A DNA stretch of 64,000 nucleotides from Paragordius varius (lineage: Eukaryota; Animalia; Nematomorpha), in the NCBI GenBank assembly GCA_964247055.1, contig OZ176050.1, positions 12,276,001-12,340,000 on the forward strand, in the 5' to 3' direction. Of this stretch, positions 23,257 through 61,430 are shown one piece after another. The position numbers and the translations under genes are program-made. Each line of letters opens with the position of its first letter. The first letter of the stretch is position 1. The notes under the pieces are model-generated. The model was not told the DNA's origin. It saw only the letters and a list, made by a program, of their open reading frames with translations, and ran no database searches.

Positions 23257-23913
23257 ATATATTACGAAAAATAATTTTTTTCTGAGTGGTTATAAATAAT
23301 GTTGATTCAAAAGACCTTTGGTTACCACAATCAGCACAAATACTAAAACATTTAGATTATTGAATTTACAATGATGGGGAAAGGCATCTTTTTATTGATT
23401 CCATAATATTTCTTTTGTATTCCTAATTTTCAAACAGTGCTTCAGAAGCTTTAATAATAACTTCTTTCCAAATTTCTCCGTCTTATTTAAATAAGAATCT
23501 CATATTTTATTAAAATTTCCGATATTTTGCAAGTTGCCATTTTTTCTTTTTTTGCTGTATATCACAATACAGTGTATATGAGCATTCAGTTGCTCTTTCA
23601 ATAATTTGCTTCCTCATTTGCCAATATCTGAATTTTTGATTGTTCATCTTAAGCGTAGTAAAAAGTATTTGGTTATTTTTTTAGGGAAAGTCAAGATGAA
23701 GTTGCATAACAAACAACATTTATCATTATTCATTATAAAAAATAAACTTCTTCCCTTTCATTATAACGATATAGCCTGGCATTTTTCTGGCTTGAATTTT
23801 TAAGCATAGTATAATATAAATTTATGAGATACCTCCATCTGTTTTTTCGTTATATTTAAACTATTTCCAAGAAAATGTTTTTAATAAAATAATTAAATTT
23901 TTGTTAACAAGTA

Positions 23914-24095
23914 AAGTAGCGTATGCAGTAAAAGATTGTTAGTGCAAAATAATCTTAATGAACACAAAACAGGGGGATATTATGGATATGTTTATAAATA
24001 GGACTGAGTGATAATTAATATATGAAAATTGTCCCCCTGTTTTGTGTTCATTAAGATTATTTTGCACTAACAATCTTTTACTGCATACGCTACTG
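23914..24095. mobile_element. 182-bp MITE with perfect 63-bp inverted repeats (young)
   Basis: 23915-23977 is the exact reverse complement of 24032-24094; TA on both flanks. Confidence 0.9.
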
Positions 24096-24732
24096 TAAAT
24101 TTTTTCGAACACAAAAATAAATTATAATTTTGTGGAGAAAAATATCTATGCAAAAATATTTTTTACATTTTTTTTTAAAAAACTTTTAGACGGTTACTTT
24201 TTGAAATCTCGCGGTCACGAAGTCGACCATTTGAACACCCTGATATTGAGCAATAACCACGAAGGTGAAAATATTGTGCTTATATACTCGCTATCTAAAA
24301 TAAAAAGACCATTTGAACTGTGACACACTTTTGTGATATATAATTTTACGAGTTTTTCTTTTTAATGGGATTTAAATCTGTATGTAAATGACAAATTTTG
24401 TGATAAATAGTTTTATCCAAACTAAACACAAAACTAAAGCAGGCTTAAGGTATGCAAAGTTTTGTTTTGATAACTCTCCTAAAAACGAGTTGATTTTAGT
24501 TTTTACAGTGAAGGAAATTCGCTTTTAATAACAAAAAAAACAAATGTAAAATCAATGTTTTTAACCGTGGTTTTTTCTATTATTTGTATAGTGAAGAAAA
24601 TGCAAAAGTATTACGAAGAAAATCGAAACAAAATTCCTTCCACCGAATGGGAATACAACTATAAGCGTTGGTGTGAATTGTTAAAGATCGAACAGGAATA
24701 CAATGAATCTTTATCGCAAACTACTAAAATTA

Positions 24733-25007
24733 CAGTAAAAATTAATATCATGCAGTTAAAACATAATAATATGCGGACAAGTATTTTTTCGAAAGACAAC
24801 TACACTTTTTTATACCTTAATTTAATAAAATATTTAATTAACATTGTGAGATATATAATTAATTGTGTTACCTATATATATGCTGTTTCATACTTTGCAA
24901 TATTAAACAAGGTATGTCTATATAAAAAATCAAGTTAAAAATCTAAAGCGGTCTTTTGAATAAAATATTTGTCTTTGTAACGTGTTGTCCGTATTATAGC
25001 ATTACTT
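24733..25007. mobile_element. Old copy of the ~270-bp CAGTAAA MITE
   Basis: TA-CAGTAAAAATT start, TGCGGACAA and TTGTCCGTAT internal TIR motifs; right end approximate. Confidence 0.5.
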
Positions 25008-25026: not shown

Positions 25027-25651
25027 TTCATGGTCCTTGAACATAAGTTGCTTGAACACTTCAAGTGGGTCCTTGAACACTTCAAGTTGGTCCTTGAACA
25101 TTTCAAGTTGGTCTTTGAACATTTCAAGTTGGTCCTTTGACTTTTTTGTTTTTACCTTTTATCAATCAAATCGTAAATCATTCATTTATTTTATCGTTTT
25201 GACCTATCTTCGATAATTTATCAAATATTTTAAATCAATATCAACTTTTAATCATTAAGAAACCCTATATCTTTATTAATTTTAAAATTATTTTGGATAT
25301 TTATAGGATTATAACACTTAATTAAAAAATATATAAGTTGTCTGGGTTATTATTTACAATTTTTCATGGAAAACATTTAAAAGTTAATAATTTTTTTAAA
25401 TTGGAAAAAATACAACAAAAAAGTGGTTTTTATATAGAAATTTTTATAATGAAAAAATATGTAGTAATTAGGAAATTACGTTAAAAAATAATAAAATAAA
25501 AAAATACATGCAAAAATCATGGTTAAATCAAACTTTAAAAAATTTAAGGACCAACATGAAATGTTTAAGGACCAACTTGAAGTGTTCAAGGACCAACTTG
25601 AGGTGTTCAAGGACCAACTTGAAATGTTCAAGGATCAAATTGAAGTGTTAA
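25027..25651. repeat. Two 21-bp tandem arrays in inverted orientation (unit AAGGACCAACTTGAAGTGTTC)
   Basis: About 5 units at 25027-25137 on the minus strand and 5 units at 25546-25651 on the plus strand; each reads as KDQLE(V/M)F heptads. Confidence 0.9.
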
Positions 25652-26303
25652 AGAGATTCTTGACAAATGGTATATCAATTTTTACTGTATATCACCAACA
25701 AATTAGACTGCTGAAGAAGACGAGCCATTATTAAATATTGAATGAACTATAACAAAATTTTGAAGACTTATTTTCTTATTAATTGGAACTATAAATAAAT
25801 ATACAATATATTATTTAAAGGAAATTTATTAAAAAGATTTGGACCACTTTTTGTATTTTCTCTATTCCGCATTCAATCGAAATGTAAAGAGTTTTTTTGG
25901 ATTGAACAGTTATATAAACAAACAGATCGAAAATCGTTTAATAGGAGTAGGGATGTGCGAATTGATACACCTATTAATAACAACAATATTTTGTTAAATT
26001 GATTGGTAATCAGAATTATCATTTGAAGCAGTAAATGCGAGATTCTGTATTGTTTTCGAACCTTTTTTTTTCAAAAATTTACGAATTATATCCGTAAAAG
26101 ATAGAAATTTATACATACATTTATTTTATACCGTAACTCAACTCATCACCAGGCATAGAAAATGTATATATACCACAATTAACATAATTTAATGTCATAT
26201 ACAAGTAGTTTATTATTTAAAACAACTAATAATGTAATTCCTTTGATTTTTAAAAAAAAGTTATAAAAATTAAACATTATGTGTATGTATATATTAAGGA
26301 GGC

Positions 26304-29300
26304 TCACGACACTGCCGTCCTAATATTAGCAGCTAAAACATTCTCAGTTAATCCGTTATTATTAGTCCCTGGTAAAATTAATTTTTCTTTCTGTATATTT
26401 GGATTTATCCATTTATTTCTTGTTGAGGAAGGTGGTATGGGATGATAGCCTGTTTTTCTAATACTATTAGAAAGATTGTAGGACTGCGGTGCAAAATATT
26501 TCGTTTTATTATTCACAAGGCTATAATTTGAGACTTGGTGCATGTTAGTTGATGATGAGGTAATAATATTATTAGAAGTAACGTTTGACTGAGATGATAA
26601 AAAAGTTTTATTTGCCAATAATGGTTGAGGATTATTGACAACGATTCTATTGGGTCCAGTGTGACGGAAAGAACAGCCAACACGTACACAACCCTGACCA
26701 AATTTACATTCCTATGAAAGATGTTATATATTAAAAATTGAATTTTTACCATAATTTGGGCATTTATAAAAACTCATTTATTCAAAAACTCTTTCTTATG
26801 CATTAATGGCATCTTGACTGATTGATAAAAAAATTGGTAAAAATGTTGAAAGCAATGATTTTATGTAATCTAAGTAGGTTAATGAAATTTAATTTTGATA
26901 AGATAACAAATTAAATACCGGAGGATGCATATAAGGACACGTAAGATTGTGACAAACTCCGCCAAATCGACAAGGGACTGTGGATAATGGACCTAAAACA
27001 CATAACAATTTTTAAAATCAAAAACATAAATCTTTCCTATTTATCCTTCAAAAAAAATGTAATTTTTTATTAAAATCATTTCAAACAACCTTTAACCATG
27101 CCAGAATTGGGAGCGGTATTTTTAACCGAATTATCTAGCATAGGCTTGTTGTTATTATGTAAGGGTTGGTTGATACTATCCAATTTAGTATTGGCAAGTT
27201 CTCTCCGTATACTGGCATGAGTAAATGGGCAATCTTTTTTAGTACAATGTGCATCAAATCGACAATTGGGATGGATGAAAAGACATTTGTCACCAAAAGC
27301 ACAATTCGGGAAATTTCTGACCAAAATTTAACATTGTTAGTATTTTATAAAGTACAATTAAATGAAAAAATATAACTGATGAGAGAAATTATATTGATTA
27401 CCAAACACAATCTATAAAACAATAAGTGTAATAAAATAACCGCCTTATATATATATATATATTTACTACTAAATATATGAATGCCAAGATAAATTCAATA
27501 TTTGCATTAGTAAAAATATCATTATTTTTATTAAGATGTAACAATATAATGATTTAATTAAACACAAACTATTCCAACTCTCATAAATTAGATAAATGTA
27601 CTTTAGTGAAAAGACACAAAATAAAAAAGTTTTCTAAATTTTAGGACTTACTTGCATGGTTGAGTAGGGTGATGAAAGATACAGGCATCCCCATTTTTGC
27701 AGATTGGCCAAAATTTGCACCGTTCTTTAACATTGTCGTTTTCAGAAAGTTCCATGCTTTCACCATCTCTATAATTATTGTTATTATTGACGGTTTCAAT
27801 GTTAATTTTATCATTGTCATTATTTATGATAATTTTCCGATTTGTCGTGTTTATGGCGGAAACTCCAAAGCGTTGATATTCATTAGATATAACTTTGTCG
27901 TCTATAAAAAAAATTAATATATCTCGAAAAATTTCATGGGTTTCAACTAAAATTTCAATTAAATTTATGTTTTCACACTATATTTTTTGATAAGAATTGG
28001 TTTAAATAAAACATATGTGAAACCTTGTAAATGTCTATTTCCGAGTCTATGGGAAAGGTTTGAGAGACTAAGATTTTGATTGCCATAATCACCTTTTATT
28101 TTACCATTATTATTGTTATTGAGCGTTACAGTAAATTCAATCGGCTTACCATCGTAATGTATGGTTGGGTCAGTTAGGTCTTCCATGTAAGCTTCAGGAA
28201 TTTTGTAAACGCATTTTTTGGACAACATTTTTTCCGTCTCATAATCAAAAACAACTTTTTCTTGCGGTGATTTGGAATGTAGTATTGTGTTCTTTTGTTC
28301 ATTAGTATTTGATGTTAAATGATTCTTTACGAAAAAAATCCAAATTTATTAAATTGGATAAAATGGTTTAATATGAGGGCAAAAAAGATGAGTTGAAGAA
28401 TAAAGTTATAAATATATTGTGAAAAATATTGAAAATAAAGATATTTCATAAAGATTACCTCAAAATTCGTCGGCATATGTTGTTGACTCAAAATATTCGA
28501 CGTATTCTTATCCTGGATTTCTTGCCTATTATTTATAAAAGATTTGCCAATGAATTATGTAATAATGTTTAGTAAATAATAAAGTTAAAATCAAATCTCA
28601 AAACCCAAAAGAACAAATTCCATAAATTGTTATAAAAAGGTTTATTCGGTTTAAAATTTGTTTATTTGTAATTTTAGCGAATGTAAATCCCTTTTCAATA
28701 AACTAACTAAAATATAATTAAAGTAATTTTTAAATTGAACCCGCATATATTAAAGATCTGTTTATTATGTATTGCAATATTTAAAATAATGTAATAATAT
28801 TTTCGTGATATTTATAGACAATCTTAGAGAGAATATATAAATATACTCGTTGTTAGGGGTTGAAAATTTTTTGCGTCTATTCCTAATTTCTTCCAATGTT
28901 AATGGAACAGTTGGACGTAATAATGAGGAATCGCTACCTAAAATTAATGGTCAAAAAAATTGGTATTAAATATAAAATAATACAGTAAAAATGAAATTTT
29001 ACGGACAAAACGTAAAAATATAAAGTCAAATATTTTTTTCCTAAAAAACAACCATGTTTTTTGAATCTTGATTTTTTCAAATATAACTCATTGTTTTAAA
29101 TAAATTGGTAACACAATCAATTATGTATTTTACAATTGTAATCGAACGATTATTATAGGATGAATTAAGGTTTATATATATATATATATATGTATATAAT
29201 TGTCTTTATATTTTCACATTTTTTCCGTGTAATTTCAATTTTTACTGTAATATAATGACCATTATGAAACAAATGTGAAATTATAATTACAAACCAATTT

Positions 29301-42265: not shown

Positions 42266-45200
42266 CTATGCAAAATACATTCTAGATAAAGTTTGGGGGT
42301 TAATAGAAATATCCCGATTAATTTTATCCAAATTTATGTTTTGAGCCGATGATGATCCACTCACTGATGCACCATCCCTAAAAAGATAAATTAAAATGTA
42401 TTGTTTATAAATAGAAATGAAAAACAATTTTTTTTATTATAAATGCTCTTTCAAACATTCAATTCCGACATTTTTAGAAACAAAAAATATTTTAAATAAA
42501 AAAAATGTAGATGATAAACTAAGAATATATGAATATTACATATTTTCCTTTGTAAAAAACATTTTTTTCGAAATAACATTAAATTCCCAGAAAATTAAAT
42601 AAATAATCATATGCATCGTTATTTTAATTGTATTTGAGATAAAAAATTAAAATATAAAGAATTTCAAACGGAAATCAAAGTAAAAGTGTGGTTTGTGACA
42701 AAAAAGATGTGTTTTAAAAAAATTATAAAAAATAAAATTTGCAAACTAAAGTAGTAGAAATTTAAATATTTTGTTTGTCATTTAGATAAGAAAAAATGTG
42801 GTTGGTTAAGAAGTGTAACAATTAATACTAAAATAAGTCCTAGAATTTTCTTTGTATCAATATAAATTATTTATTTTTAAGAAAAATAAAAATCCTTGAT
42901 AATATTATTGAATATATATAATTGTAAAATATCTCGGTGTATTCTTATAAAAGGACATCTTTTAGAACATTTTGATGCAAACACATCAAAATTAAAGTAA
43001 ATTTATTAATAAAAGCATCTAACTTTATCAAATTAAAACAAGATAATTAAAAAATAAAAATATATTAGAAAAGAATAATATGTAATCAAAGATACCACCA
43101 AGATTATTCTTTTATTTTTTCCCTAGATTACAAAAGTTAAATAAATAAATATCGTTTTTCATTGAAAGCAAATTTCTTTATATATTTTTGAATCAATAAA
43201 TTATTAATTTTAAATCAATCCAAAAAAAAGAATAATAAAATTTTTACGAAGAATGCATCTCCTCAGCCAAATGGTGTCGGGCCCTAAAAGCCACATGATG
43301 TGCATAATAAGCCGGAGCGGGGATACTTACAGTCCGATTGCAACGAACATAAGAGTGACACAGAGCATATGTTAGTGCTTGAAATTCATCGGCAGAAAGC
43401 TTATTATCATCCCAAAGCAAGTGGTAATGCGTTGGTCGAGATGTACCCTATACACGATATAAAAAGAGTATATTATATTTTAGTTAAAAACAACATTTTT
43501 AGTTTCGTTTGGATGGAAAAATGTTGCATTTGGTTTATGTTAAAAAGGTGTTACATTTGAGTCAAAAATGGTTTAGATGAAGCAAAGTATTCAAAAATCC
43601 ATCTGTCAGTCTCACTGAGTTGTATGAAAATACAATACCCCACACTTTATTGCTGGCTTTGTTCACCAATTGGCACAATACAGTACCGTATGGATAAAAA
43701 ACAACAATAAATATGTGTAAAATTAAACATTTCATGTGAAATATTAAAGTATGAATGTGTAGTCAAAAGAGAAAATTTGCCAATTAATATATATATAATA
43801 GACCTTAATCTTAGTTACCATAAATAAAATAAAAAGAGCAAATTTAAGAAAATCATATCTCTTACTTGAATCCCTGCATGACTACATAGGAAAAAGTCAT
43901 TTTCAATCGGATGTACGATACCCTTATCGACTATCGTTCCAGGGGGTACGTTCCCACTTTTTCCACACTATGTTATATGCATATAAATAGTATAAAAATT
44001 ATTAATTAATGAAAAGAACATAAAATATTAACTTGTTCTAAAACAAAAAACCGTCATTTTTTATCAAATAATAAGCATTTGCAAAATATGTTTCTTTTTT
44101 TATAGCTGTAAAATATCAAGTAAAAGCTGTTATATACCTCAACCACATATTAAATAAATTCAAAATCATAAAAAAATAAAAAACAATAATAGCTTGTTTG
44201 GAAAAACGACAATTTTCTTCTATATAAAAATCTTTTTGTTTACTCTGCTCTCGAATTTCGATTCAGATAAAAAGTTAGTAACCTTTAAAATTATGTCTCA
44301 AAAAATCAAAGAAAAACTATAAATAACCATAATATTTCAAAATACCAAACCAAGTTGATAACTATAAAATCTGTTTCAAAACAAAAACAGAAAAACATAC
44401 CTGATCCCTTGAATCAGTACAAAACAATCGAGTATGATGTCTTTTTTGGACGACGGCAAAAGTTATGAGCGGTTGATATCCTGCTTCGATTTTCGTACAG
44501 GCAGCCTGTATAGCAGCAACTTCGTATTGCAACACCTAAATATTGATTTTATAAATATGTGTGTGGGAAATTATTTATAGTTAGAGAGTATATAAAAAAT
44601 AAAAATATCGGGGTTTTTACCAATCGCTACTTTTGGCTTATTTATAATGCCTCAGAAACTAAACTGATTCCTTTATATAAAATTGCTCATTTACAGTAAA
44701 AAATTAAAATTATACAGACATAATGTATAAAAGACATATATATATTTTTAAAAACAAGCAAACTTTCTTAAAACTTAATTTTTAATTACTTTTTTATAAT
44801 ATATAATTTATTATGTTTTCAATTTACATCTCTTCTATTTCAACCTTTGCAATTTCAAACAATGACAAAAAATGTCTTTGTGTTTGTCTGTATTGCTTGA
44901 GAAAAAAAGAAATATATGCATTCTCATACGTTTTCCGAAAAATTGTTTTAAGGAGATATATATAAACATCTATTATTATTACACAGTGTGCAAAATTAGA
45001 ATTTTTTTCTCAGGATATCATACCTAGCTTAATATGACCGTTGTGACATATACATCTCAAAAATATAAGGATAATAAAATTGTAAATGAAGAAAACTTTT
45101 TTTCCACTTTTTCCATATATGGTTATATTCGGAAAAAAACAATTTATTTGAATCCTTGATCAAAAATTATAAAACTTATATATAATATTAAATAATATTG

Positions 45201-48200
45201 AATAAATATTATTTGCAAATTTTGGCGCAATATGAATTGATAAATTTAAAATAAACCTCAAATTAGTAAATCCAAATAATTTTGGCCTTTTATATTCATA
45301 TAAAAAACTCGATGAAAATTAATATAATATGTGCTAAAATTTAAGTTTAACTTTATTTGTTAATAATAATACCATTTATATATATAATAATAATTACATA
45401 TACACAAAATATAAATGGACAAGATTTTAACATAAATAATAATCTTTTAATATAAATGTCTTGGTGATATGATTTTATATGAGAAATCCAGGTGTATCAA
45501 GAATAAAACAGAATGAAATTGTCAAGTTAGATAAAAGGTTTAACCCTGATATTGATTGTATATAATATAATAATTTTAGGTAACAGAAACATTTTTATTT
45601 TTTACATATAAAAAAAAACTTTTAAGCCCAATGAATGTTGCAATCATATATATATATATATAAATCATAATAAAAAAATATTACAGTTACATGTTTTAAT
45701 GGCTTTTTAGGTGCATTCTAAAAATTGGAAATGTGAAATTAAAAAATTCAAATTATGCCCATTTTTTCTTAAATTATTTTTTAAAACGGCAGTTTATGGC
45801 TATAAAAAGACTTAAACTTTAATCATTTTTAGTAAAACTGGGCCACTAAAAGCGTATTTATAACCCTGAATTAAAGATATACTCTTTATAGTATAAATAT
45901 CTGCAAGTATGTTGCACAGTTCTTGAGAGAAGATATTTTTGCAGCTGTAAATCTTTTGTTGAGTGGCAATGCTTTATATATGCTTATATTTGAAATTATT
46001 AAAAAGTGTGGATATACATTTTATGATAAACTATTTTAATCAGGTATTTTATGTTATTAACATTTTGGCAAAAAAGACTTTCTCATTCTCAAGAATTTTT
46101 TCAATGAGTTGGATCTCATATGCCGCCTAAGTAGGATAGCCTGTTACCGATGATCCAAGAGGAGAATGGATAATCTACGAGAAACCAATGAAACCTTGGC
46201 AGAACTCAACATTAAAACTAAAAATATCAGAGTTTTATTTACTTAGTTTCAAAAAGGATGATCTCGTTTCTAAAACTTTCATCGAAAAATATAATTTTAG
46301 ATTGAAAAGAGTGAATATATGATATGTATAGCAAAAATATGTTTATTACACAAAGAACAATGTAAATTATAAATTATAGGAAGAATATAGGTAATTAACA
46401 TTATAGAAGGTAATTTACATGCACACCGTGATTTGCATAAAAATATAAATTTAACAAATTCGAATAAATAACAGGTATATTGTATCATAATGGTTGATCT
46501 AGACAATAATGCCAAAGATAATCATCATATGACTGAGGCTTTTGTTTCTATACAAATCTTCAATTTTTTGCAAGGTCTGATAAACTCTTTCACTAATCGG
46601 ATCGGTGAGTTTACTTACCGAGTGGAAATTCGTCTATGTGCTGATCCACTATATATAGGAGCGACATATTTACACCTAATATGAAATTTATCCAGTTGGT
46701 AAAAACTACTAACAAGATCTGATGCCAATTCCCTGCAGTTCTCACTTTTGTAATGATAGAGGAAGTTATCATTAAATAACTTGTATGCCCAAGCAATCAT
46801 CGCTTTAACCCCTATCAAATTAGAGAATTCTTCATCTGCCAAGAGTTGGTCGATTTGGGGACCAGTCAAGCACCCATTTGATAATTTAGATTTGGACATT
46901 TTGAATTTACCAAAATAATGGTCAAATGCTAAATCACCATCCATATCCAAATTTATCAAAAAGGTTCTTGCCACCCTTAATTTTATGTGTAGAAGAGGGA
47001 CCACTAATCTATCCACATCGACATGGTTTCATTTCTATCCCATACTCTTCAATTACATAAACCAATCTTGAGAATATATCCCCAGGATCACTGAAGTGCA
47101 TTTCAATATCCCGGTTATTGAAATGGCACCACGGGCATGAAAAGGTAGGATAACCCGATTTTAGTCCTCTTAAAATTGACAGAAACTATCATCATCAAAA
47201 GGTTAAATAATACTTTGAAATCACCAATTATGGTTATCATACCCTATCAATCGCAACATTTCTGAATACAATTCTTAGCTTTCCCGCTCATTTGGCTGCT
47301 TCCCCTTCTATGCAACCGTAGCAGTAATACTTTATTTTCCCATGCCTACACCTTCAAAAATGGGATACGCTATTGTTGTGATATACTTTTTTAATCTAGC
47401 AGACAAAAAAAATATTCAGGAAGATTGGAACCTTTTCATGGATGCGAATTAGGTTTTTCATATATTTGTATTTCTTTAATAATTAATATAAAACTGATTG
47501 CTATGTAGCTTCAAAGTTGTCTTGCTTCATGATATGGCGATTTCCAAACCCTTGATTATTGCATGGAAAGGAAAGCAGCCAAATGAGCGGGAAAGCTATG
47601 AATTGTATTCAGAAATGTTGCGCCTGATAGGGTATGATAACCAATGGTTTCAAAATAATATGATGATAGTTTCTGTCAATTTTAAGAGGACTGAAATCGG
47701 GTTATCCTACCTTTTGATGCCCGTAATGCCATTTCAAAAACAGGGATATTGAAATGCATTTCAGTCTGCCTGGGGATATATACCCAAGATTGGTTGATGT
47801 GATTGGAGAGTATGGGATAGAAATAAAACCATTTGTCGATATGGATAAATTAGTGGTCCCTCCTCTTCACATAAAATTGGGGCTGGCAAGAACCTTTTTG
47901 ATTAATTTGGATATGGATGTTGGTTTAGCATTTGACCATTATCTTGGTAAATTCAAAATCTCCAAATTAAATTATCAAATGGGTGCTTGACTGGTCCCCA
48001 AATCGACCAACTATTGGAACATGAAGAATTTTATAATTTGATGGGGGTTAAAGAGAGGATTGCTTGGGAGGCATACATGTTATTTAATAATAACTTCCTC
48101 TATCATTACAAAAGTGAGAAGTACAGAGAGTTTGCATCAATCAGATCTCGTTAGTAGTTTTCAGCAACTGTGTAAATTTGAAGTCATAATAAATCAATAT

Positions 48201-51200
48201 ATTATGATTTAACACCATTAACTATTAGGTATAAATATGTCGCTCAAACTACACATAGTTGATCAGCACATAGACAAATTTCGACTCAGTAAACTCACCG
48301 ATCAGACTGGTGAAATGGTTCATCAGACCTTGCAAAAAATTGAAGATTTGTATGGGAAAAAAAACCACAGTCATATGATTGGTGAGTATCTTTTGCATTA
48401 TCGCCTAGATCAATTATTATGATACAATATACCTGTTAATTATTCAAATTTGATAGATTCATATTTCCATGCAAATCCCGTTGTGCATGATTATATGCAC
48501 TTGTATATTTATAATGTAAATTACCTTCATTCATATATTCTTCCTATAATTAATAATATACATTCTGTTCGTTGTGTAATAAATATATTTTTGCTAAGGA
48601 TATCATATATTCACACTTTTCAATCTAAAATTATGTTTTTCGATGAATGTTTTAGAAACGAGATCACCTTTTTGAAACTTTGTGAATAAAATTCTTCCAT
48701 AGATTTCCATTTTTAGTTTTAATGTTAAGTTCTGCCAAAGTTCCATTGGTTTCTCGTAGATTATCCATTCTCTTCTTGGGTCATCGGTAACAAACTATCC
48801 TACTTAGGCGACATATAAAATCCAACTCATTAGAAAAGTTCTTGAGATTGAGAAAGTCTTTTTTGCCAATATATTAATGACCTAAAATACCTGAAAATTT
48901 ATCATGAAATGTATATCACACTTTTTAATAGATTCACATATAAGCATTTAAAGCATTGCTACTCAACAAAAGATGTAAAGGGCTGCAAAAATATCTTTCA
49001 CGAACCGTGCAACATATTATAACTATAAAAACTTACAGAGATTTATACTATAAATAGTATATCTTGTAATTGAGGGCTATAAATACGCTTTTAGTGGCGC
49101 AGTTTTACTAAAAATGATTAAAGTTTAATTCTTTCCATAGCCATAAACTGTCTTTTCAAAAAATAATCCAAGAAAATAATAGGGCATAATTTAATTTATT
49201 TAATTTAACATTTCTAATTTGTGAAATGCACCTAAAAAGCCATTAAAACATGTAACTGTAATAAATAATTCAGTATTATGATTAGTGTATAAATATATGA
49301 TTTCAATATTCATTGGGCTTGAAAGTTTTCTTATATGTAAATAAAAATGTTTCAGTTACTTAAAATTATTATAAATTATGATACTATCAGTATCATAATT
49401 AAACCTTTTATTTATTTTAAAAATTTCATTCTGCTTTATTATTGATACACCTGGATTTCTCATATGAATTACATATGACTAAAATCATATCACTAGAACA
49501 TTTATATTAAAAATTTTAATTTAGTAATATTAAAAATTTTAAAAATTTATAACTTTGTGTTTATATAATTTTTATTACATATAAGTGGTATTAATATTAA
49601 TAAATAAAGTTAAACTTAAATTTGGGCGAATATTCTATTAATTTTTATCGAGTAATTTTTATGTTACTAATATAAAGGGCTAAATTTAGTTGGATTTACT
49701 TAATTGAGGTTTATTAAAAATCTATCCTTTGATATTGAGCCAAAATTTTCAAAAAATATTTAATTATTATTATTTATATATAAAAGTTTTATAATTTTTG
49801 ATCATGGATTATGCAAATAAATTGATTTTTTCCGAATATAACCATATATGGAAAACAATTTTTTTATCCTTTTATTTTTGAGATGCATATATGTCACAAC
49901 ATTCATATTAAGCTAGGTGTGATATCTTGAAAAAATTTGTTGCACACTGTGTTATAGTTTTCCAGATTATGCTTTTATATTTAATAACGTACATTTCAAA
50001 CACATTAATTAATTATCTTTCAAAAAAGTAGCTCAAGTGTTAGACGCCTTTGTAAAATAAACTTGAATGATCACAACCACACATTTTATTATGAAAAATT
50101 GCTTTAAACTTCCGAATTCACATTTTTTAAAACTATTCTACACTCATTTAACACTAAGTTTTCAAATATTCCATATACTACAGTATGCACATTTATTTTT
50201 GGCAAATTGGCAACACAATAGCGTCTGGGTAAAAACAACAAATGGTTAAGGTTCAGAGTCTTGTTTGACAGCATTAAATTTGTTTGTTTGTTAAATTATA
50301 AACAAAAATTGCTTTATATCATACGTTACTGTTTGCCAATCGACCAACATATATATATTTTATAATCCCGCCCGCATAAATATAAATAAATAAATAAGTA
50401 AGCAAAAGCAAGTAAGATACCTGTAAAAATTGTCCCTCACTCACACCATCCCGATAAAAGATAATTTTGGTCGGTTTAGCTCCATTGTTTTGATGATAGA
50501 AACGGCGTAATAGTAATGTAATCATTTCAGACAAATTCTCGATAATTTCAACTCGGTGACCTTGGGCCTTAACGCACGCCATATATTTTTGTGGGTAATG
50601 ATCCATGCTCCCAACCACCTACATATTAATTAAAGGATGATGGCGCATTTCTATAGTTGCATAAGTAAGCAACCAGTGATACTCAAACCGCATGCGACCC
50701 TAAAAGAAGTGCTTTTTTATGACCTGCGACCCTAAATTTTTGATTTAATACTAATTTGGTGCATAAATATCTGCAAATGTGTCAAACAACAATAAAATTT
50801 TATCGGTTTTATGGCCCTTGAGACAGGAAAAAAAATTTTTTTGGAACTTTAAAAAAATTTTTGTAAAACAAGATATTTCAAATAAATGATGAATGGAACT
50901 GTACATATTAGTGTCTACTTATAAACAATTTTTAATTACCTAAATAGATTGATGTTAGTCATAAATAAATTGTGCGATTGATTGATAATTTAAGTTACAA
51001 AAAACTCAAACAATCAAGGATTAATATATTAATCAAAATATAAAAACCAAAAAATCAATAAACGTTTAAAAAGTTAATTTTATACAACACATAAACAACA
51101 GGTATTTAAAAAAGGTGGTAAACTTTCGTCAATCGTATTGGTTCGAATTAGTTAATAAATTCAATTTGTCTGGGGAAAAAATAAAGACTTTTTAAGTTTT

Positions 51201-54200
51201 GTAATAATTCTAAGCTAATTAAATGGACATTGACCGACTTTTATAATAAATTAATAATGAGTAAGTAATCTGTAACATACAAAAAACAGTAAATTATTAT
51301 AACAAAACGTAAAAATTTGACTTTTTTCAATTACAAAATCACATTTTATTTATAATCATGAATTTCTTAACCTTTGTTTTAACAGAGATATAAATTGCAG
51401 ATACTCGCTTTTTATCAAAATTGTCATATAATATAATTAGAAAATATATTAGTAGCTTTTACCTAAAACATCAGAAGAATATCATTTATAACGAAAATGG
51501 GGTCCAATCATGAAAAGATCAATTGTAAATTATAAGAAAAACAAATATAGTTTTCTTTATAAATCAATATTTAGTTTTAATCATAGATAACAAACCGCAG
51601 CAATAGAAGGCATCTTATTATCACCAGGCATGGGATGAGTAACATCCGCCCCCAAAACTATAACGGGTTCCTTGAACAGGGCCATTTTCATTGGGTAAAT
51701 TACGTTATCATTTATTCCATCACATTTAGCATTAATCTGAATATTGCAGAGGAGAAATAATTATAATAAAATATTAACCGCTTAGAAATTAATCAAGCCT
51801 ATATTACAAATAAATAAAAACATCATTTATGTAAAAAGGAAAAAACTCTAAAATATATCAATCGAATTTTAGAAATGACTCTGTTTATTTATTGCATAAA
51901 TATATCACCAAATTAGACATATAACGTAATAATTCAATTTAATAATGGGAAAATATAGGCCATATGTAAAATATTATAAGCATTGCTAAGATATTAGATC
52001 AGACCATACTAAATGTACAAATCTACATTCAAAACATATATCATTACCAATTTAATGGAATATTATGGGAATTTTATAACCCTATATTACGTATATGCTG
52101 CCTTTAAAATCCAAATTTATATGGAGACTCGTAAACCAAGTCCCAAAACGTTAAAACAGACAGAATAAAAAAATTAGGGTAAACACACCAGTAAATAACC
52201 CCAGTTGTTTTTAACTATTCTCTACTAAAACAATATATTGAAAAACAGTCAGTCACGCGAAAAAAAGTTACCCCCAAAGACAGCCGAATAATAAAGTACG
52301 CACATATAAATTTGAATATCGGATACATACCATTAAGCAGAAATTAACAAGGGCCGGACTGCTCCTCGATTTGGTTTGATTAAACCGCTTTCTTAATCAT
52401 ACAAAGTATTTTATAAACTTATTCCAAAATCAAATCTCATTATACCCTTTAAAATGCACCAGTACTAAGTTCTAAAAAGTTGTATCTCTTGATTCCACCA
52501 ATGTAACAAGAATATATTTATCTAGGGTCAAAGTCAAGCGAAAATTTATATTACCTTTAGGCACAAATTAACCAGTAGGGCTGGACTACTCCTTTGAACA
52601 TTTTTGCTTTGGATACATTGGGTCATGAAACCGTAAACGACATCACCAAGCCGTTTTATGCGCGGGTACAGAGGTGAAGTCCTCCCTCCCCCCATCCCCG
52701 GCAAGATAACTATAACGAGTTGTAAGGCACCTTTCTCGGGTTCCACCCGTTTCTTGAGATGATCAAACAGTTCGTCTAAATCACGTTCATTAGCGTACGT
52801 GCGAAACGTTGGGATCGGATTTAAATGTAAATTCATGGATGCACCTAAGCATATGAAACAAAATTGTTGTTATAATTTGTGTAATTGTTATCGATAATAA
52901 AAGTTAAAAATTAAAAATCTAATTATATTTTATATACGCATTCATTCGAGATTAATCGAAAACACATTAGGCATTATTGTATAATGCGAATTTCCCTCAC
53001 TATTTGGCTATGAAACATGATAAACAGATAAAAAGTAAACCACAACATTTGAATTCAAAAATAAGAGAGCGAAAAAAGATTTATCTATTATTGACAATAT
53101 ATATGGCCAATAAAGCTTAAACCCTTTTTTCAAAAAAAAAGTTTTTCAAATTTATTTTTTCCGTTAATAATTAATATACAATATGCACATTTATGCTGGA
53201 GGATTCACATCATAGTTGGTCAATTAACAACTTGGTAATTTATGAAAAAAACAACTAAAAACAATATTTACCTATCTTATATTATATGGACAAAATTAAT
53301 TTTATAACATACGCTACTATATTACAAATCAATCAACCATAATGAGGAATAAGCAAACATAAAGTGTATACTGTAAAACAAACTCGTTTTTTAGTAAATA
53401 TCTAAAATATTTAACCTGTATTACAGAGACCCTTAAAGAAGGCACTCAATGCTTGATCATTACAACGGTTCATGGATTCGAGGATGAGTAAGGCCCAACG
53501 ATCGATTTGAGCTCCGCGCAAAAACTTTTCACCTTGTCTCATGTCCCACACACCGCGGCTAGGTATGATAGTTTTTTCCCTTTGTTTCTATAGCAAAATT
53601 TATTATTTAACTATTAGTTTTGATAAACTTAAATTTGAATAAATTATATGAATACAATAGTAAAAAGCCAATTGTATATTTATTTCATAAAGACAAAAAG
53701 CATAAAAAGTAATATATATATATATATATATATATTTAAAACTATATCATCAAACCTTAAAAAAATTAATTTATAACCAAATAAACAAGTTAATCCTTTT
53801 GAGGTCAATTTAAATGTTTTGATCAAATGTTGAATGGTTTTAAAAATTAATACTGCAATTTAAATTAATGTTAGTTTATTCCGATTCTTTTTTTTTTCTT
53901 ATTTAAAAGTAGCTACATTTTCAATACCAACTATTATTATTTAATCCACATATATACCATTTAGAGTTCACCCTTGAACAATATAAATTCACCCTAAAAT
54001 AATTTATGTGTTTTTTAAAGTTGAATTTATATTTTTTTAACTTCTTAATCAAATTTTTCAAATTAATATAATACTGAAAAAATAAAAAACTATGCCATAA
54101 AAATATATTTCATATTAATAATGAGTTATATTAGCCAAACACATCATTTATTTTTAGGGTAAATTTGAATTATTAAAGGGTGAATTTGAATTGTAAATGG

Positions 54201-57200
54201 TATATATATAATTTAAGTTAATGCGTGCAAAAAGAAACATTATACATTATCCTGAATTAAGAAACACAATGTACTGTATTGTTATATAATTACCACATCA
54301 CTGGCATAACAAATCTTAGGTGCTTCCAAAACACGGCCTTGTAATTCAATCAATTTATCATCGACACTAATGCCAAAAGCTTTCATCACTGGGTCTTGAT
54401 TAAATTTTGCATCATGAATCTATAAAAATGAAATGAAATGGAAAAGAATTCCATGTTAGATAGCCAGCCAATTAATAAAAAACCATATCTAATAAAACTT
54501 TTTCGCATAGTATATTGCAACAAGGATTGAATCTAGCCACAGGTTATCAATTAAAAAAAACCTGTTAAAGTGTACGTGCTTATTATGAGATAATTTTAAA
54601 ATAATATATCAAATATTTTAAACTTGTGAAATCTATACTAAAACTTTAAAAATCAATGGGAACCGACTTTACACTTCGTAAACTGTTTAGTTTGCTGCAA
54701 CAATATATTTAGCATCAATGGTTATTAAAAACAATTATCAGCGTCAGACAGGCTATTATTTTTTAATTAGTAGAATACCCAACTCTTACTACAAAATAAA
54801 CTTTTTATAAAACTAAAGATTTAAAAATATTTTATCAACAACTATTATAAATTTTACCTTTCCCATAATTGAGCGTTCACGTTCAGGAGCCGGTATAGCC
54901 GTGTGCTAAATACAAAAAAACAGTAAAAGTATTGCATATTTTATAAAAAAAAAAGGTTAAAAATCAAAAATTAAAACTTAATAAAGGCTAAAATATGTTT
55001 AAAATAAATACCCGTATCATATTGGCAACCATTGTATCTGTCACTCGATTTTTCTTTTGTCCAGCTTTAAGCTCACAAACCTATGAAATAATAAGTATAT
55101 AAATATTTCAATTTAAAAAAGCCAATAGTTTTTTAATAAATTTAAAAAAATTGATTAATACAAAATAATTTAATTAATATACCTCAAAAGGCAAATAAAC
55201 TTGTTTTTGTAAACTACCGACTCTCAAGCAAGGCAAATTGGGATATCTATATATGCCAAAAAACACATATATTAATACATATAAAGTCACCGAATAAAAA
55301 AATTTATGCAAAAATTTTTAGTACGATAAAATCTCCACAATCTGATTAAATAAAAATATATTGAAATAAATTAATTATCAATAAATCTTTTTTAGTGGGT
55401 AATTTAATTTTTTTAAAAAACGAAAAAAATATCAGTATTATGAGCAAAAAACCAATAAAAAATTATTACATAAATACTCAGCACAAAAAAATTCAATTCT
55501 AAGTTATTTAAAAATGAAATTATAATAATAAATTATATTACTGTAAGCTTTTATTGTATTGCAACTTGAAATATTCGGCAACAGAAACCTTCGTTTCTTT
55601 TCCATCGCGTGACATGGTAAACCTAAAACCAAAAAATAAAAAAAATTATAAAAAAAGGACTTTAATTTAAAAAGTTAATAAATATTTGTAACTATAATTT
55701 GCATTAGATTAATTGCGATAAACAATTTTTATTACAATAAAAATCAAAAATGATAAATGATTTACATTTGTTGGGCCGCTGAAAGATTTGATATTTCTCG
55801 TATAACATAAGTCCTTTGTATATGACCTTGATGTGTAACTCTAACTTTAAGGTCTAGCGAAATAAGGAATATAGAAAACCATTAATTAAACAAAAATTAT
55901 ATATTTATTGATGAATTTAATCAACTTTTTAATATACCATTAAAAGTTTATATTACAGTTAAACTCTTTTATTGGCAAAAAGATAAAACATACAAAAATA
56001 CAAAATTTTATCAAGAAAACGCCATAAAAATGCAAAAAATTATCTAAATAATACCCAAATTTTAAGCGTTTTAAACATAACTGGGAAAAAAATAATTAAA
56101 AAGTTTAGTTAACACAAGAGGAGAAAAATGGATTATATCATAATAATATAATAATATGGCACATAAAAGTAGTTTAACTATATATATTTTTATCTTTATT
56201 TTATAATCCCGAGTAAAAAGGCAATTGATATTAAAAAATTATGTGAAACAATACTTTTCAATTCTTTCTGCAACATAGATTTTTGATGCGGACTTAAACT
56301 ATTGATTTGACGTAGATTCAAAAATTCTTGAGCAAAATTAACGATTGAGATTTGCTTGTAAAAAGCGGTAGCAGCCACTGAATAGGAGAAGATAAAATAA
56401 ATATATTATTTGTTAAACACTAAATATTCGCATCAAAAAAATAATTGATAAAAAAAATAAATATTTTATATGGTAATAGATAGCAACCATACTGCTAAAT
56501 ATATATAATTAATAATATGTGCAATTCCAGTCTTTTTGAAAAATTGGATTAGGATATTAAGGACATTTAAAGATCCTTTTAATTTCATATTTAAAAATTT
56601 AAGTTAAAAAATAAAAAGAATCATTTTTAATGAGTTATAAGCCAACAATTGTGAGATTTATCCTCACAATTATTCCTCGTAATTTAAACAAAAACATGAT
56701 AATAAACCAATTATTCGGTATAAAAAAACAAAAAATATATATTACAATCAATATTTAAAGTCATTTTCCATTGGGTGGGTCTAGCGCTCTGAAAACGACC
56801 CATCCATAATTCACATCCTTCAAACAGATTTGGCGGGTTCGTTGGATAAGGATATAGCGAACGACCAACAGGGACATATCTAAATTCAAGATATATGTAA
56901 ATCAAATTGTGGGTGCAAAAAAAAATTGTCTTTTTGTAATAAAAAAATGTTTTTACATTTTGTGCAGTTATATATTTTGGTCGACAAAATAATTGCAATA
57001 TCTCATATCTTACCATATTATATGGATAAAAAGCTGGTTAGATAGTTACATATAAATATATATATATATATATATATAACGCTAGAGTTTTCAAGTAATA
57101 TATATTCATGATAGCTAAAATCATAAAAGTAATGCAATCTCTAAGATACTTTTATATAATAAAAAAGGTAATCCAAATAAAAAAATACTATGAATAATAA

Positions 57201-59299
57201 TAAAGAATTAGTTGTAAATTTTGTATATTCTAGTTTGTTAATAAGACATATAAATTTAGAACAAACTACTGTTTTATACCACATTAATATGCATTTTTTA
57301 TGCAAAAACCTCAAAAATACGTATGCTTTAGATTTAGAGCTAAATAAACACTATGATAAACTGATATTATTCTTAATAAAATATTATCATAGGTAGCGAG
57401 AGAAATATATTCATAACTAGGAAAAGAGTCCAAGTTAGTTTAATTAAAATAAAAAAACCTTAGAGAAGGTGTATGCTTCATAATAACATCAATGGCTTGC
57501 ACAGGGTCCTGCGATATTTCAGACAAACGCCCCGACCAAAATTCTTCCAATTGAAACATGTTAACTTCGGCGGCAAATTGAATCTTAACCTTATAATCGA
57601 TTTTACGATCTTCAAAAGGAAACGTGCCATTCAAGATTAGCTAAATAAAAAAATAAATGGAAAAAAATAATTTAAGAAAGAAAATGTTTGTCATATACTA
57701 AAGACAAAATTCAGGTATTTCAAAGGATAATGTGAAAAAACTCAGTATAATATATTTCCTCCTATTTTATGTTTTCCCAAATAAAAATTGAAGGCCAGAT
57801 ATAAAAATATAACTGGTTATATAATTTGTTTTGAAAATTTAATTAATATAAAATATAATTGTTTTTACTTGTTAATTAATTTGCGTATAAAAATTTCAGG
57901 ATGAATGAGTCGTGCCTAATAAAAAAATTAATAAATTTAATATTAATTTCACAACTGTAAATTGCTATTGTGAGTTTAGTAGTAAAAAAAAATATATATT
58001 ATATAAAATATGTTATGGTGTGCTTTAAACATTCAATTTTCTTAACTTTTTTTAAATTGACATTTATTTATAAAATCCAAAAATTACATCTTCGCCACGA
58101 TTGATGGGTAAAGGACGAACAGTGTAAAAGTTTTTGCTTCCATCAAAAGCGGCACAATTGTTTTTAAAGTAGGTATCCTTGCTTTGATCTTTAATGTACT
58201 CAAACAAAATTCTAAATCATCCAAAATAAAATAGAAAACATTGTTTAGTTAATAGTATTTATTATTTACCTTTCTGCAAATCATAATATTAAATTATATC
58301 TAAATTTGTGTTAATATTGTCTCAAAAATAAATTTCACATTCGCCTAAAATTTAAATATTATTAAGATAAAAATATCAAATAATATTCAAATAAGGGATA
58401 GGGGTAAAAAATTTACATAATGAATTTTACAAGCACATAATCTTTCTAACAAATCACGTAAGTTAAAAAAGGCTTAAATTTTTAATTTGGCTATTGAATG
58501 ATTTAATGACGTAGAATTTAAATTTAAGTAAATGAAGCGTACATTTAAAAAATTTAGATAATATATACAAACATATCCCAAGTTAAAAAAGACTAAATAA
58601 AATTTAAATATAAAAATGTAACCTATTGATTGATTTTGGCAATTTATTTGGTGTTATATCAATATCATAATGATAGAGGTTATTAAGTGCTACATTTATT
58701 TTAACGTGATTGGCTCGGAGTGAGATGGGACGTCCAACAGAACCATACCCTACACGCTTCGGTGGTCTCATTCCAGTATTAACCTATGAGGAATAATTAA
58801 TACGTTTTACTTTAAAAGTAGGACGTGCGGGTACAACCATTTTATTCTCATTTCCATTTGGGGCACCACCGTTTCCATTTTTTCCAGAATTTTCTTGAAC
58901 CATTTTGGAAGTATTAACCTAATCATAGAAAACAAATTATGATACCTTTTTGGGCGGTTTAGTTTTAGTGCTTTCTTTTGAAACAATTGGTTTGGGTATG
59001 TCTATAGTTAAATTCTTTAAAGAATCTTCCAATATATCAAGATTAAATTCTGTAGCAACTTCTTTAACAACAACTGTTTTTTCCTCAACTTTAGGTTCTT
59101 TTAATGGTTTAGACTTTTGTTGAAAAGTAGGGAAAGCTTCTTGAGTTACAGACTTCGGCGATGTTTGAGGCGCTTTTGAGGTGATTTGCTGTTTTTTGGG
59201 TTCTTTTTTTTGTTCAGATATTTGAGTTACAACAGGTTTGGCACTTTTATTTTCTGTTAAGTCGAGTTCTCGAAGAGGTTTTTTATTCTTTTTGCCCAT
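42266..59299 (-). CDS. AGO: Argonaute (AGO clade), 21 exons, ~1003 aa, predicted slicer (DEDH)
   Basis: Exons 58946-59299, 58811-58918, 58623-58783, 58088-58211, 57459-57640, 56746-56879, 56255-56377, 55766-55853, 55542-55622, 55183-55246, 55012-55080, 54858-54905, 54294-54419, 53416-53587, 52555-52844, 51596-51736, 50421-50618, 44401-44535, 43866-43967, 43248-43447, 42266-42377 sum to 3012 nt in one frame. N domain ([10 protein letters not shown]), PAZ (YPNLPCL..G...VYLPFEVC), MID (YPRIK..TQC..CLK), PIWI ([46 protein letters not shown]), ends MYFA. Confidence 0.95.
46480..47315 (-). pseudogene. Chapaev3-like transposase relic, left arm
   Basis: Broken frames [54 protein letters not shown]; these match remembered Chapaev3 motifs GDLKV, Cxx[25 protein letters not shown]. 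Confidence 0.75.
47498..48422 (+). pseudogene. Chapaev3-like transposase relic, right arm
   Basis: ORFs SFKVVLLHD...ESYE...[37 protein letters not shown]...[11 protein letters not shown] (cf. SDE.GERFHQ); frameshifted and 5'-truncated. Confidence 0.78.
58784..58945 (-). other. AGO introns 1 and 2: two 27-nt micro-introns (58919-58945, 58784-58810) flanking a 108-nt exon
   Basis: Both GT-AG, phase 0, each with in-frame stop(s); both acceptors are followed by GTTAATACT. Confidence 0.7.
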
Positions 59300-59761
59300 C
59301 CATAGCTATAATTTGAAAGAGGGTACAAACACAACAAATAACTAATTGAAAATCCAAATATATAAAATCTTTTGCCTATTTTTCTGTTTTAATCAAATAT
59401 TATTTATTTTATCATACATGATATATAATTTTTGGGCATTATAAATATTAAACAAAGCCATATAGATATTAAAAGTATATTTTAGTAAAGTATATATCGA
59501 ATAATATTGACCTAAGCGTTGATGATATACATGCCAAAATTATCAGTATATGCTTTTGGCTTTAGGGCTTTAGAGAGATTAATTTATAATCTGTTGGGTG
59601 GTTTTATACCCATATTAAAATTTGAATATATTTATAAAAATTTTTAGCATAACGTCAAAATATAAACTACTATTTTGGCTTTTGGGCGTATGATAAAAAA
59701 GATTTTTTAATATGTTAAAATATCCTAATCTTAAGGGTAGCAGCTTTTTTTAATTTTTTAA

Positions 59762-61430
59762 CACTTAAATACAACACATTCATTTCAGACCTTGGATTCA
59801 AAATGGGGTAGTTGGATACCCCAAATTAAATAATTCAAAAAATATGAAATGATTTGAAACCATGCCAAAAATTTGCACATTCATAACATTAATGGAAATA
59901 TATAAAAAATTTAATTCAAAAATACTTAATATTACTTTGATTTAGGTAAAACCGGAAGCTAAAAATTTAGCCATGACATTTGTTCAATAGCTAAACTTAA
60001 AAATAATACAAAATAAACACTTTTTGTGTTTCTATCAATGTTAGATGTGATTTAAATGAAAAATTCGCTTTTATTTTAGCTTTTAACACTTCGATTCAAA
60101 TTGCGGTTTCTAAATACCCTAGACTAAATTTAAGTTTAAATTTTTACAAAACTACTGAAAGAAACGGTCCTAATTTAAATTTATGCTTCTATCCTAAAAT
60201 ATATTATATAAATAAGCCGAAATATTTGTTTTGAAAAAAAGTTTCAATTAAACTATTTTGATGCCATTTTTATTTTACAATTTTTTTTTCAAAATATCGT
60301 GTTTATTTGACTTTAAAGCTAAAATGAAAGCTAAATTTTTATTAAAATCACATCTAACATTGATAAAAAAAATTAAAATGGTTTATTTTTTATAATTTTT
60401 TAAATTGGGCGGGTGATAAAAAAATTTTTTTGACTTGACTTGCAAGTTTATTCAACTGGCTTGCTTTCATGTGCTGAAAAAAATTTAACATTACACGACT
60501 TAAGTCAAGCAAGAAAATTTGATAAGGTGGTGATAAAAAATCATATGATCAACTTAAAGATTTTGCAAGTATGGTGTAGGGCAGACTTGACAGATTTAAA
60601 AATATGGATAAAATTATTTTGGAAACTATTTATGTATAAAATTTAGGTTTTATATGTACAAACCTTTGTTAATGCTATAAAATGTTATTTATAAATTTTG
60701 GCTAATTAATCTATTCATTGGGTGATGCAAAAAAGGATAAATTTATAGAAAAACTCTACTAATATTTAACATGGCATATAAAAATATTAAATATATCAAT
60801 TACGTGACCGCAAAAAAATTGGATTCTCAAAAATTTCTTAAAAATACTAATTAAATATTCTTGTAAAATTAATTTTCGTTTATTTAAAGCAAAAGATTAC
60901 TTCACAATTAACACTTCGATTCAAATTGGGGTATCTAAATACCCCAGACTAAGTTTAAATTAATATTTTTAAAAAACTACTGAAGGAAACGGTCCCAATT
61001 TAAATTTATGCTTCTTAAAAATTTTATAAATATGCCAAAATACCTATTTTGTTTTGAGAAAAAAGTTCCATCTCAAACTACTACGACGCCATTTTTATTT
61101 TACAAAATTTTTGCAAAATATCGTCTTCATCAAATTTTAAGGGTAAAACTAAAGCTAATTTTTTATGTAAATTACATCTAACATCGATAGAGAAAAAGCG
61201 GTTTATTTTGTATTATTTTTCAATTTTACCATTGCACACATGTCAGGTGAACTAAATTTTTACCTTTCGGTTTTAGCTTTAAATAACTAATATTAAGTAT
61301 TTGAATAAAGTTTTTTATATATTTCGGTTTATTATCATATAAGTGCAAAATTTTGCCATGGTTTCGATTCCTTCCATACTTTTTAAAGTATTTGATTTTA
61401 AAAAGAAAATGAGTGTGTTGTATCCAAGTG
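59762..61430. mobile_element. 1.67-kb CAC...GTG element with TTAA flanks upstream of AGO
   Basis: Start CACTTAAATACAACACATTCATT matches reverse complement of the end (CACTTGGATACAACACACTCATT); TTAA on both flanks; internal ~330-bp direct repeat (~60085-60400 vs ~60910-61230); another left end at 38337. Confidence 0.7.

Follow-up and report, generated by a model that had tools for sequence, protein, structure and literature searches.

Several described systems bear on long inverted repeats that are built from transposon sequence or lie in genes of the RNAi machinery. Mu killer of maize, an inverted partial duplication of MuDR (PMC3440606), gives a hairpin RNA of several kilobases, and its silencing of MuDR, with siRNAs, has been shown genetically. 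Drosophila and mouse hpRNA loci, endo-siRNA loci and the repeats of LIRBase (PMC8728187) are long imperfect inverted repeats; the hpRNA loci are defined by producing Dicer-dependent small RNAs and, in flies, by having specific target genes. Hairpins that serve as RNAi substrates also lie in introns of core RNAi genes, namely miR838 in intron 14 of Arabidopsis DCL1 and miR1047 in Physcomitrella DCL1, and their processing costs host transcripts according to the summary in PMC4429486. Among transposons, Chapaev3 elements are defined by a 3-bp TWA target duplication, terminal inverted repeats starting with CAC and transposases of 485-561 aa (PMC3014272), and an N-terminal Chapa zinc-finger domain is common to Chapaev3 and RAG1 (PMC4411706).

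The element described here, in an intron of an Argonaute gene of Paragordius varius, can be set against each of these. It has the architecture of Mu killer, an inverted partial transposase duplication with a duplicated terminal repeat, and a hairpin RNA of several kilobases is predicted from it. Unlike Mu killer, which belongs to the Mutator superfamily, it is of Transib/Chapaev type, its host is an animal, its hairpin is part of a spliced intron and its arms are 12% diverged; it is known from its sequence and predicted fold. With the hpRNA loci and LIRBase repeats it shares imperfect arms over 400 nt and a predicted hairpin RNA, but nothing beyond its own transposon family is evident as a target. 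Like the DCL1 hairpins, it places a predicted fold in the intron of a core RNAi gene. Those hairpins, as summarised in the same source, are short miRNA precursors hosted by the cutting enzyme, whereas here a 5-kb transposon palindrome sits in the gene for the effector AGO, not in that for a nuclease. The published description of Chapaev3, rather than any named Repbase sequence, is matched by its TTA duplication, its CAC ends and the approximately 560-aa, RAG1/Transib-fold relatives of its coding remnant; a mirror-image pair of 3' halves without a 5' end departs from that description. We consider the element most likely to descend from a cut-and-paste transposon of Chapaev3 type (Transib/RAG1 superfamily) and to be an old palindromic derivative of it, dead and non-autonomous, Mu-killer-like in form and passively carried.

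All coordinates are positions in the analysed window, a 64,000-nt stretch of P. varius assembly GCA_964247055.1 (contig OZ176050.1, 12,276,001-12,340,000, forward strand). The host is an AGO-clade Argonaute gene of many exons on the minus strand, spanning approximately 42269-59305 and ending in SRMYFA before the stop codon. Its coding blocks run through ArgoN, ArgoL1, ArgoL2, ArgoMid and Piwi, which is the full AGO domain set. The exon upstream of the intron (50421-50618, minus strand) corresponds to human AGO2 residues 614-678 and to positions 101-165 of the Pfam Piwi profile. It matches AGO2 chains at E 8e-17 and carries the catalytic Glu (GHRVEII) and Asp (YRDG), equivalent to E637 and D669. 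The downstream exon (44401-44535, minus strand) corresponds to AGO2 679-723, with its alignment starting at residue 679/680. Between them lies a GT-AG intron of 5885 nt (44536-50420, minus strand; GT at 50420, AG at 44536), assigned from the splice-site letters and from flanking exons that are contiguous on human AGO2. It falls between the codons for Q678 and V679 and interrupts the Piwi profile at positions 165/166, and the reading frame is uninterrupted across it. With its seamless frame and complete set of domains, the host gene is intact. The spacing of the other coding blocks leaves no gap above about 1 kb, which agrees with the earlier note in making this the largest intron of the gene, placed directly after the exon with the catalytic YRDG Asp.

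Proteins homologous to the AGO exon ORF reach at most 57% identity, and thus offer no close relative for a comparison of orthologous introns; a search for contigs encoding this ORF found none on record. Rfam (gathering thresholds) and tRNA scans of 40000-62000 gave no match. A sigma-70 promoter/terminator scan returned 61 predictions against 48.7 ± 7.4 in shuffles, a bacterial model and thus a meaningless comparison for a eukaryote.

The element occupies 44982-49951 (4970 bp) and is delimited by the arm alignment and by its termini, CACAGTGTGCAA, which are identical at 12 of 12 nt in inverted orientation and resemble the RSS heptamer. A TTA flanks it on both sides (44979-44981 and 49952-49954), as expected of the 3-bp TWA duplication; any 3-nt flank match has a chance of about 0.027 at the local composition, and the TTA match is weak by itself. 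The intron DNA outside the inverted repeat measures 446 and 469 nt. The inverted arms do span most of the intron, as had been claimed, but "almost filled" overstates the element proper, which makes up 84% of it. The left arm (44982-47315, 2334 nt, minus strand) and the right arm (47559-49951, 2393 nt, plus strand) are each the 3' half of a transposon, and they enclose a spacer of 243 nt (47316-47558, plus strand), the size given previously. Weak tblastn matches cover the spacer region, with residues 224-305 of the relative P0031 at 47348-47653, residues 165-236 of P0054 at 47366-47641, and P0092 from residue 269 at 47423. The spacer is thus probably transposase coding sequence as well, from further upstream in the right-hand copy. 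The element consists of two transposon 3' halves joined head to head; its outer ends therefore have the CAC terminus in common, and the two transposase remnants are read toward the outside. An intron of about 915 nt already existed in the PIWI-coding part of the gene when the element inserted there as one unit, with its TTA duplication.

The left remnant (46502-47243, minus strand) matches residues ~317-475 of relatives of ~560 aa, and its later part is disrupted by 4 inserted nt that include a stop and by damage to an internal intron. The right remnant (47634-48422, plus strand) matches residues ~306-557, retains a 57-nt GT-AG intron (48172-48228, plus strand) and is broken by a frameshifting 4-nt insertion and stops. 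The arms keep the C-terminal ~45% of the transposase; the N-terminal ~55% and the 5' end of the transposon are missing. With a partial transposase and independent frameshifts and stops in each arm, the element reads as non-autonomous.

For a 137-aa arm-encoded fragment, a search found 159 relatives at E ≤ 1e-3, the full-length ones being about 560 aa long. One of these, P0002, is 39% identical to the fragment over 110 aa and gave a structure model with a pLDDT of 87.9. The best 49 Foldseek matches of this model in the PDB are all RAG1, HzTransib or BbRAGL (E about 1e-8, down to 1.9e-8; TM about 0.47-0.50). The transposase family is therefore predicted to fold like RAG1/Transib, as judged on this relative rather than on the element's own remnant. 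In addition, positions 6-101 of a profile of 22 relatives match an N-terminal RAG1 fragment (21wb_A) at E 0.015. In the N-terminal region of the relatives, which is deleted in both arms, Pfam gave zf-AD matches below threshold only, and a Pfam search of the arm-encoded pieces matched no family. The decayed Chapaev3-like transposase that the earlier note saw in each arm is upheld by the tblastn remnants, the TTA and CAC ends and the fold of the relative.

The arms form 21 collinear inverted-repeat blocks (45005-47315 and 47559-49935), and a single gapped BLAST alignment (44977-47315 against 49956-47559) is 81.2% identical over 2482 columns. Globally aligned, the left arm and the reverse complement of the right match in 1982 columns and mismatch in 269, and a further 225 gap columns fall into 37 indel events. 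Identity is 88.0% when gaps are ignored and 80.0% when they are counted, in line with the 80-90% previously estimated by eye. Identity per 200-column block ranges from 81 to 93%, and the largest gapless blocks, up to 186 nt, are 90-93% complementary. The K2P divergence is 0.13. In the AGO-sense RNA, transition differences between the arms would leave 70 G:U and 61 A:C oppositions (p = 0.48), with no wobble-sparing excess, and a test of the arms for strand-biased mutation found no bias. The arms are old, and their decay looks neutral, with no sign of constraint on pairing. The divergence, the 37 indels and the 70:61 ratio lean against a selected function.

In sequencing run X1, 697 contigs fall on the window, with depth by far the highest on the terminal ~300 nt of the element. 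The element's family is therefore repeated in the genome. Its internal part seems low-copy: contig depth there sums to some 4-16 times the depth of single-copy pieces, although this figure is not a copy number. In a second sample with the same species label, a contig bridges the right end of the element (49888-49996) with 8 differences, which suggests that the insertion is common to diverged lineages and possibly old. Among the 15 joints listed of 31, none skips about 4970 nt as an empty-site allele would.

A long imperfect hairpin, as the earlier note anticipated, is predicted when the AGO-sense intron RNA is folded (MFE -2872 kcal/mol, 2153 inter-arm pairs). The fold has 33 helices of at least 19 bp, the longest reaching 65 bp with G:U pairs included, and the arms share 17 perfect Watson-Crick runs of at least 21 nt, the longest being 45 nt. 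The predicted hairpin would be a credible Dicer substrate, a point against passive carriage. Its intronic position implies that the element would be co-transcribed by read-through from the AGO promoter; the presumed RNA run X8 has 0 records on the window.

In the reading that we favor, the element would be transcribed only within the AGO pre-mRNA and spliced out as part of the intron, its RNA folding on itself into an imperfect duplex of about 2.2 kb. Because this folding would return the splice sites to about 0.9 kb apart, the large insert may be better tolerated. The palindrome may go back to a broken or hairpin-capped element that was repaired or replicated incorrectly. Fold-back priming is one possible route; in another, a hairpin end would have been replicated and the center then deleted down to the 243-nt spacer. 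The decay of the arms and the base rates of such repeats suggest that the element is carried passively. By-product siRNAs would be compatible with this evidence; any such siRNAs would resemble those of Mu killer in maize rather than the output of an Argonaute-tied device.

The alternative that survives best, which we still regard as rather unlikely, is that the element works as a Mu killer does: a hairpin made from the AGO promoter would be diced to siRNAs against the Chapaev3 transposase mRNA, and the insertion would be kept or tolerated for this silencing. The location in AGO would then be incidental, and any germline-expressed host gene would do. The predicted duplex is long, and the AGO-sense RNA contains transposase sequence in both sense and antisense. 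An intronic inverted repeat of ~5 kb at soybean CHS gives siRNAs, as cited in PMC8728187. However, the arms are 12% diverged, with many indels and no bias that preserves pairing. A hairpin lying wholly within an intron would need nuclear dicing or escape from lariat turnover.

Less probable still is an origin from two independent head-to-head insertions of one family, each later truncated at its 5' end, instead of one palindromic unit. The 12% difference between the arms would suit such an origin, and the many X1 contigs that match the window at 95-99% indicate that one arm may have nearer relatives among other genomic copies than in its partner arm. On the other hand, the TTA duplication flanks the whole unit rather than each arm, and both truncation points would need to fall within the 243 nt of the spacer.

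We give very little credence to the self-arming or autoregulatory RNAi locus proposed earlier, in which guide output would be coupled to AGO transcription and hairpin cleavage would lower AGO mRNA. The hairpin does lie within the PIWI-coding part of AGO, and a precedent exists in the loss of transcripts to intronic hairpin processing at DCL1/miR838 and PpDCL1/miR1047, as summarised in PMC4429486. Against this stand the seemingly neutral decay of the element and the abundance of such repeats. For 77 invertebrate genomes, LIRBase lists 297,317 inverted repeats whose arms exceed 400 nt (PMC8728187), thousands per genome. Since long inverted repeats are this common in invertebrates, some are expected in RNAi genes, and first readers of a sequence flag RNAi-gene locations selectively. 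The wider notion that transposon hairpins in core RNAi genes are retained as built-in siRNA sources, tying guide supply to the machinery or throttling it, seems scarcely more probable.

Least credible is an assembly artefact, a mis-join of a repeated family whose short-read contigs break at the arm ends, since exact X1 short-read contigs cover pieces of both arms, the 12% of differing sites make the arms distinguishable copies, and a 334-nt X1 contig (47248-47581) crosses the junctions of the spacer with both arms with 1 difference, X1 being possibly the assembly's own sample and not independent.

As the passively carried palindrome that we favor, the element offers a well-resolved case of a RAG1-like (Chapaev3) transposon, with RSS-like CACAGTG ends, in palindromic form, and it is useful for repeat annotation of the P. 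varius genome. If the AGO intron does yield hairpin siRNAs, animals would have their own counterpart of Mu killer, built into an RNAi gene itself. Contig joints that appeared to connect opposite strands were considered as the centers of other palindromes and rejected, because the joined positions are mirror-equivalent; the contigs are thus ordinary copies of the family that resemble one arm over part of their length and the other arm over the following part.

The inserted element is hosted by an Argonaute gene of the AGO clade on the minus strand (approximately 42269–59305), in which the coding blocks follow the order ArgoN, ArgoL1, ArgoL2, ArgoMid and Piwi and the final exon ends in MYFA. Its intron at 44536–50420 is bounded by GT and AG. 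The exon upstream of this intron aligns with residues 614–678 of human AGO2 and contains the equivalents of E637 and D669, while the downstream exon (44401–44535) resumes at residue 679/680. Since the flanking exons are continuous on human AGO2, the PIWI domain is seamless after splicing. With the D669 equivalent in the upstream exon, the intron follows the exon of the catalytic Asp, as the earlier note described, and it is by far the largest intron of the AGO gene. Subtraction of the inserted element leaves ~915 nt, which is within the size range of the other AGO introns.

A repeat search of the window identified 21 collinear inverted blocks that pair 45005–47315 with 47559–49935, with a gap of exactly 243 nt between the innermost pair, and 44977–47315 was aligned to 49956–47559 in a single gapped BLAST alignment. 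These results confirm the two inverted arms and the 243-nt spacer reported from the sequence alone, and show a genuine inverted repeat that greatly exceeds chance expectation. An identical 12-mer, CACAGTGTGCAA, is located at 44982 and, inverted, at 49940–49951, where arm homology begins sharply, and TTA lies directly outside both ends. Based on this sharp onset and the flanking TTA, we define the element as 44982–49951 (4970 bp), comprising a left arm of 2334 nt (44982–47315, minus), the spacer (47316–47558) and a right arm of 2393 nt (47559–49951, plus). Identity between the arms is 88.0% over aligned columns, or 80.0% with gap columns included, and they differ by 37 indel events and a K2P distance of 0.13.

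The longest open frame encoded by the arms (137 aa; 47028–46618, minus) has no match in Pfam. A library of 1.84 billion proteins contains 159 relatives of this frame, which are ~560 aa at full length. In tblastn, each arm retains only residues ~306–557 of these relatives, both remnants read outward from the palindrome center, and the spacer shows weak similarity, in the right-arm orientation, to more upstream residues of the relatives. The outward C-terminal remnants and the spacer match indicate that the element consists of two 3′ halves of one transposon that meet head to head; the right copy is ~243 nt longer than the left. Each remnant has its own frameshifts and stops. One supposed frameshift in the right remnant was rejected, as the transposase gene has a 57-nt GT-AG intron there (48172–48228, plus), the excision of which joins a single frame. 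In the left arm, 16 nt of this intron are left (46676–46691, minus) after a 41-nt deletion, and its GT is mutated to AT. Some other supposed frameshifts in the transposase remnants of this genome may also be introns.

The predicted structure of P0002, a full-length relative, has a pLDDT of 87.9, and its best 49 PDB matches are all RAG1, Helicoverpa Transib or amphioxus RAG-like chains (E-values down to 1.9e-8). The family profile gives a marginal match (E = 0.015) to the N-terminal zinc region of RAG1, and atlas feature neighbors carry RAG1_RNase_H (score 0.82), which we treat as a lead only. Chapaev and Chapaev3 are clades within the Transib superfamily according to Kapitonov and Koonin (PMC4411706), and Novick et al. 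defined Chapaev3 by a 3-bp TWA duplication, terminal inverted repeats starting with CAC, and transposases of 485–561 aa (PMC3014272). With its TTA duplication, CACAGTGTGCAA ends and ~560-aa relatives, the element agrees with this definition in every testable feature. Together with the PDB matches of P0002, this agreement supports the proposal of a Chapaev3-like transposase. No Pfam model exists for the core of this family (P0001–P0150; RAG1-fold proteins of ~560 aa); its consensus includes conserved motifs such as SDEHGERFHQ and one starting with CFLC, and 9 of 22 members show sub-threshold zf-AD matches at the N-terminus.

Exact contigs from the DNA sequencing run X1 lie on both arms and run across the spacer (47248–47581). 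Nothing obvious therefore points to a mis-assembly of the palindrome, though the assembly may itself derive from the X1 sample. The element family is repeated, and 697 X1 contigs match the stretch. The summed X1 depth, which is not copy number, reaches tens of thousands over the terminal ~300 nt versus ~200–500 for single-copy pieces, and is a few-fold over single copy in the internal parts. Many X1 and X5 contigs start or stop at 46182–46225 in the left arm, and depth in the bin 46080–46279 is ~4 times that of the corresponding mirror bin on the right, as if the left arm contained a short high-copy segment. Contigs of X5 (sample S3, same species label) are ~7% different, and the listed pieces match the locus (44480–50479) at ~90–94%. 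The species label may cover diverged lineages or cryptic species. One X5 contig (49888–49996) extends from the element across its right boundary into flanking DNA, and no empty-site joint is among the joints listed in the mapped DNA runs. The X5 bridge hints that the insertion is common to diverged lineages and is no rare young allele.

The palindromic element in the AGO intron is confirmed and its Chapaev3-like family supported. We consider it probable that the element is a palindromic derivative of Chapaev3, dead and non-autonomous, which entered an ordinary AGO intron in one insertion and now travels with the gene and is removed by splicing. Its termini and target duplication show that it was inserted as one unit. 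The palindrome may have formed by fold-back priming or by replication of a hairpin-capped break, and a stabilizing central asymmetry would have arisen afterward. RAG1/Transib enzymes make hairpin ends, according to the titles of the matched PDB entries, but a tendency of the host's own repair is no less likely as the source of the palindrome. Self-folding of the insert may account for its tolerance within the intron.

The earlier note proposed a self-arming or autoregulatory RNAi locus, with the intron hairpin as an siRNA source. None of the runs listed for the stretch is recorded as RNA, and of the four runs compared with it, the presumed RNA run gave no match. The long imperfect hairpin itself is predicted by RNAfold, which gives −2872 kcal/mol and 2153 inter-arm pairs for the whole AGO-sense intron. 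The predicted fold contains 33 uninterrupted helices of at least 19 bp (the longest 65 bp including G:U), and when Watson-Crick pairs alone are counted, the longest run is 45 nt and 17 runs are at least 21 nt long. In layout, the element resembles Mu killer, in which part of a transposase gene is duplicated in inverted orientation and transcribed from an adjacent gene (PMC3440606), and the DCL1/miR838 intronic hairpin, a parallel for the autoregulatory version (PMC4429486). The 131 inter-arm transitions would yield 70 G:U and 61 A:C on AGO-sense RNA, with no bias toward preserved pairing (p = 0.48). The substitution spectrum between the arms is symmetric, and divergence is distributed along them (81–93% identity per block). 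Tests for selection on the hairpin, based on such comparisons within the palindrome, are negative. The candidate RNAi function seems unlikely on the evidence so far. Long inverted repeats are also abundant: LIRBase lists 297,317 with arms >400 nt across 77 invertebrate genomes (PMC8728187), and the window contains four smaller hairpin-type repeats (23884–24125, 25051–25653, 12398–12588 and 59999–60399; arms 74–112 nt, 78–90% complementary). Such an insertion in some RNAi gene is therefore in itself unsurprising.

The four smaller repeats look like MITEs, and one of them precedes the first AGO coding block by 0.7–1.1 kb. The intron DNA left of the element and outside the inverted repeat (44680–44980) has a summed X1 contig depth of 13,600 versus a few hundred for single copy, and has weak look-alikes in the window at 24693–24910, 29101–29242 and 20002–20263; it is probably a separate repeat family within the AGO intron.
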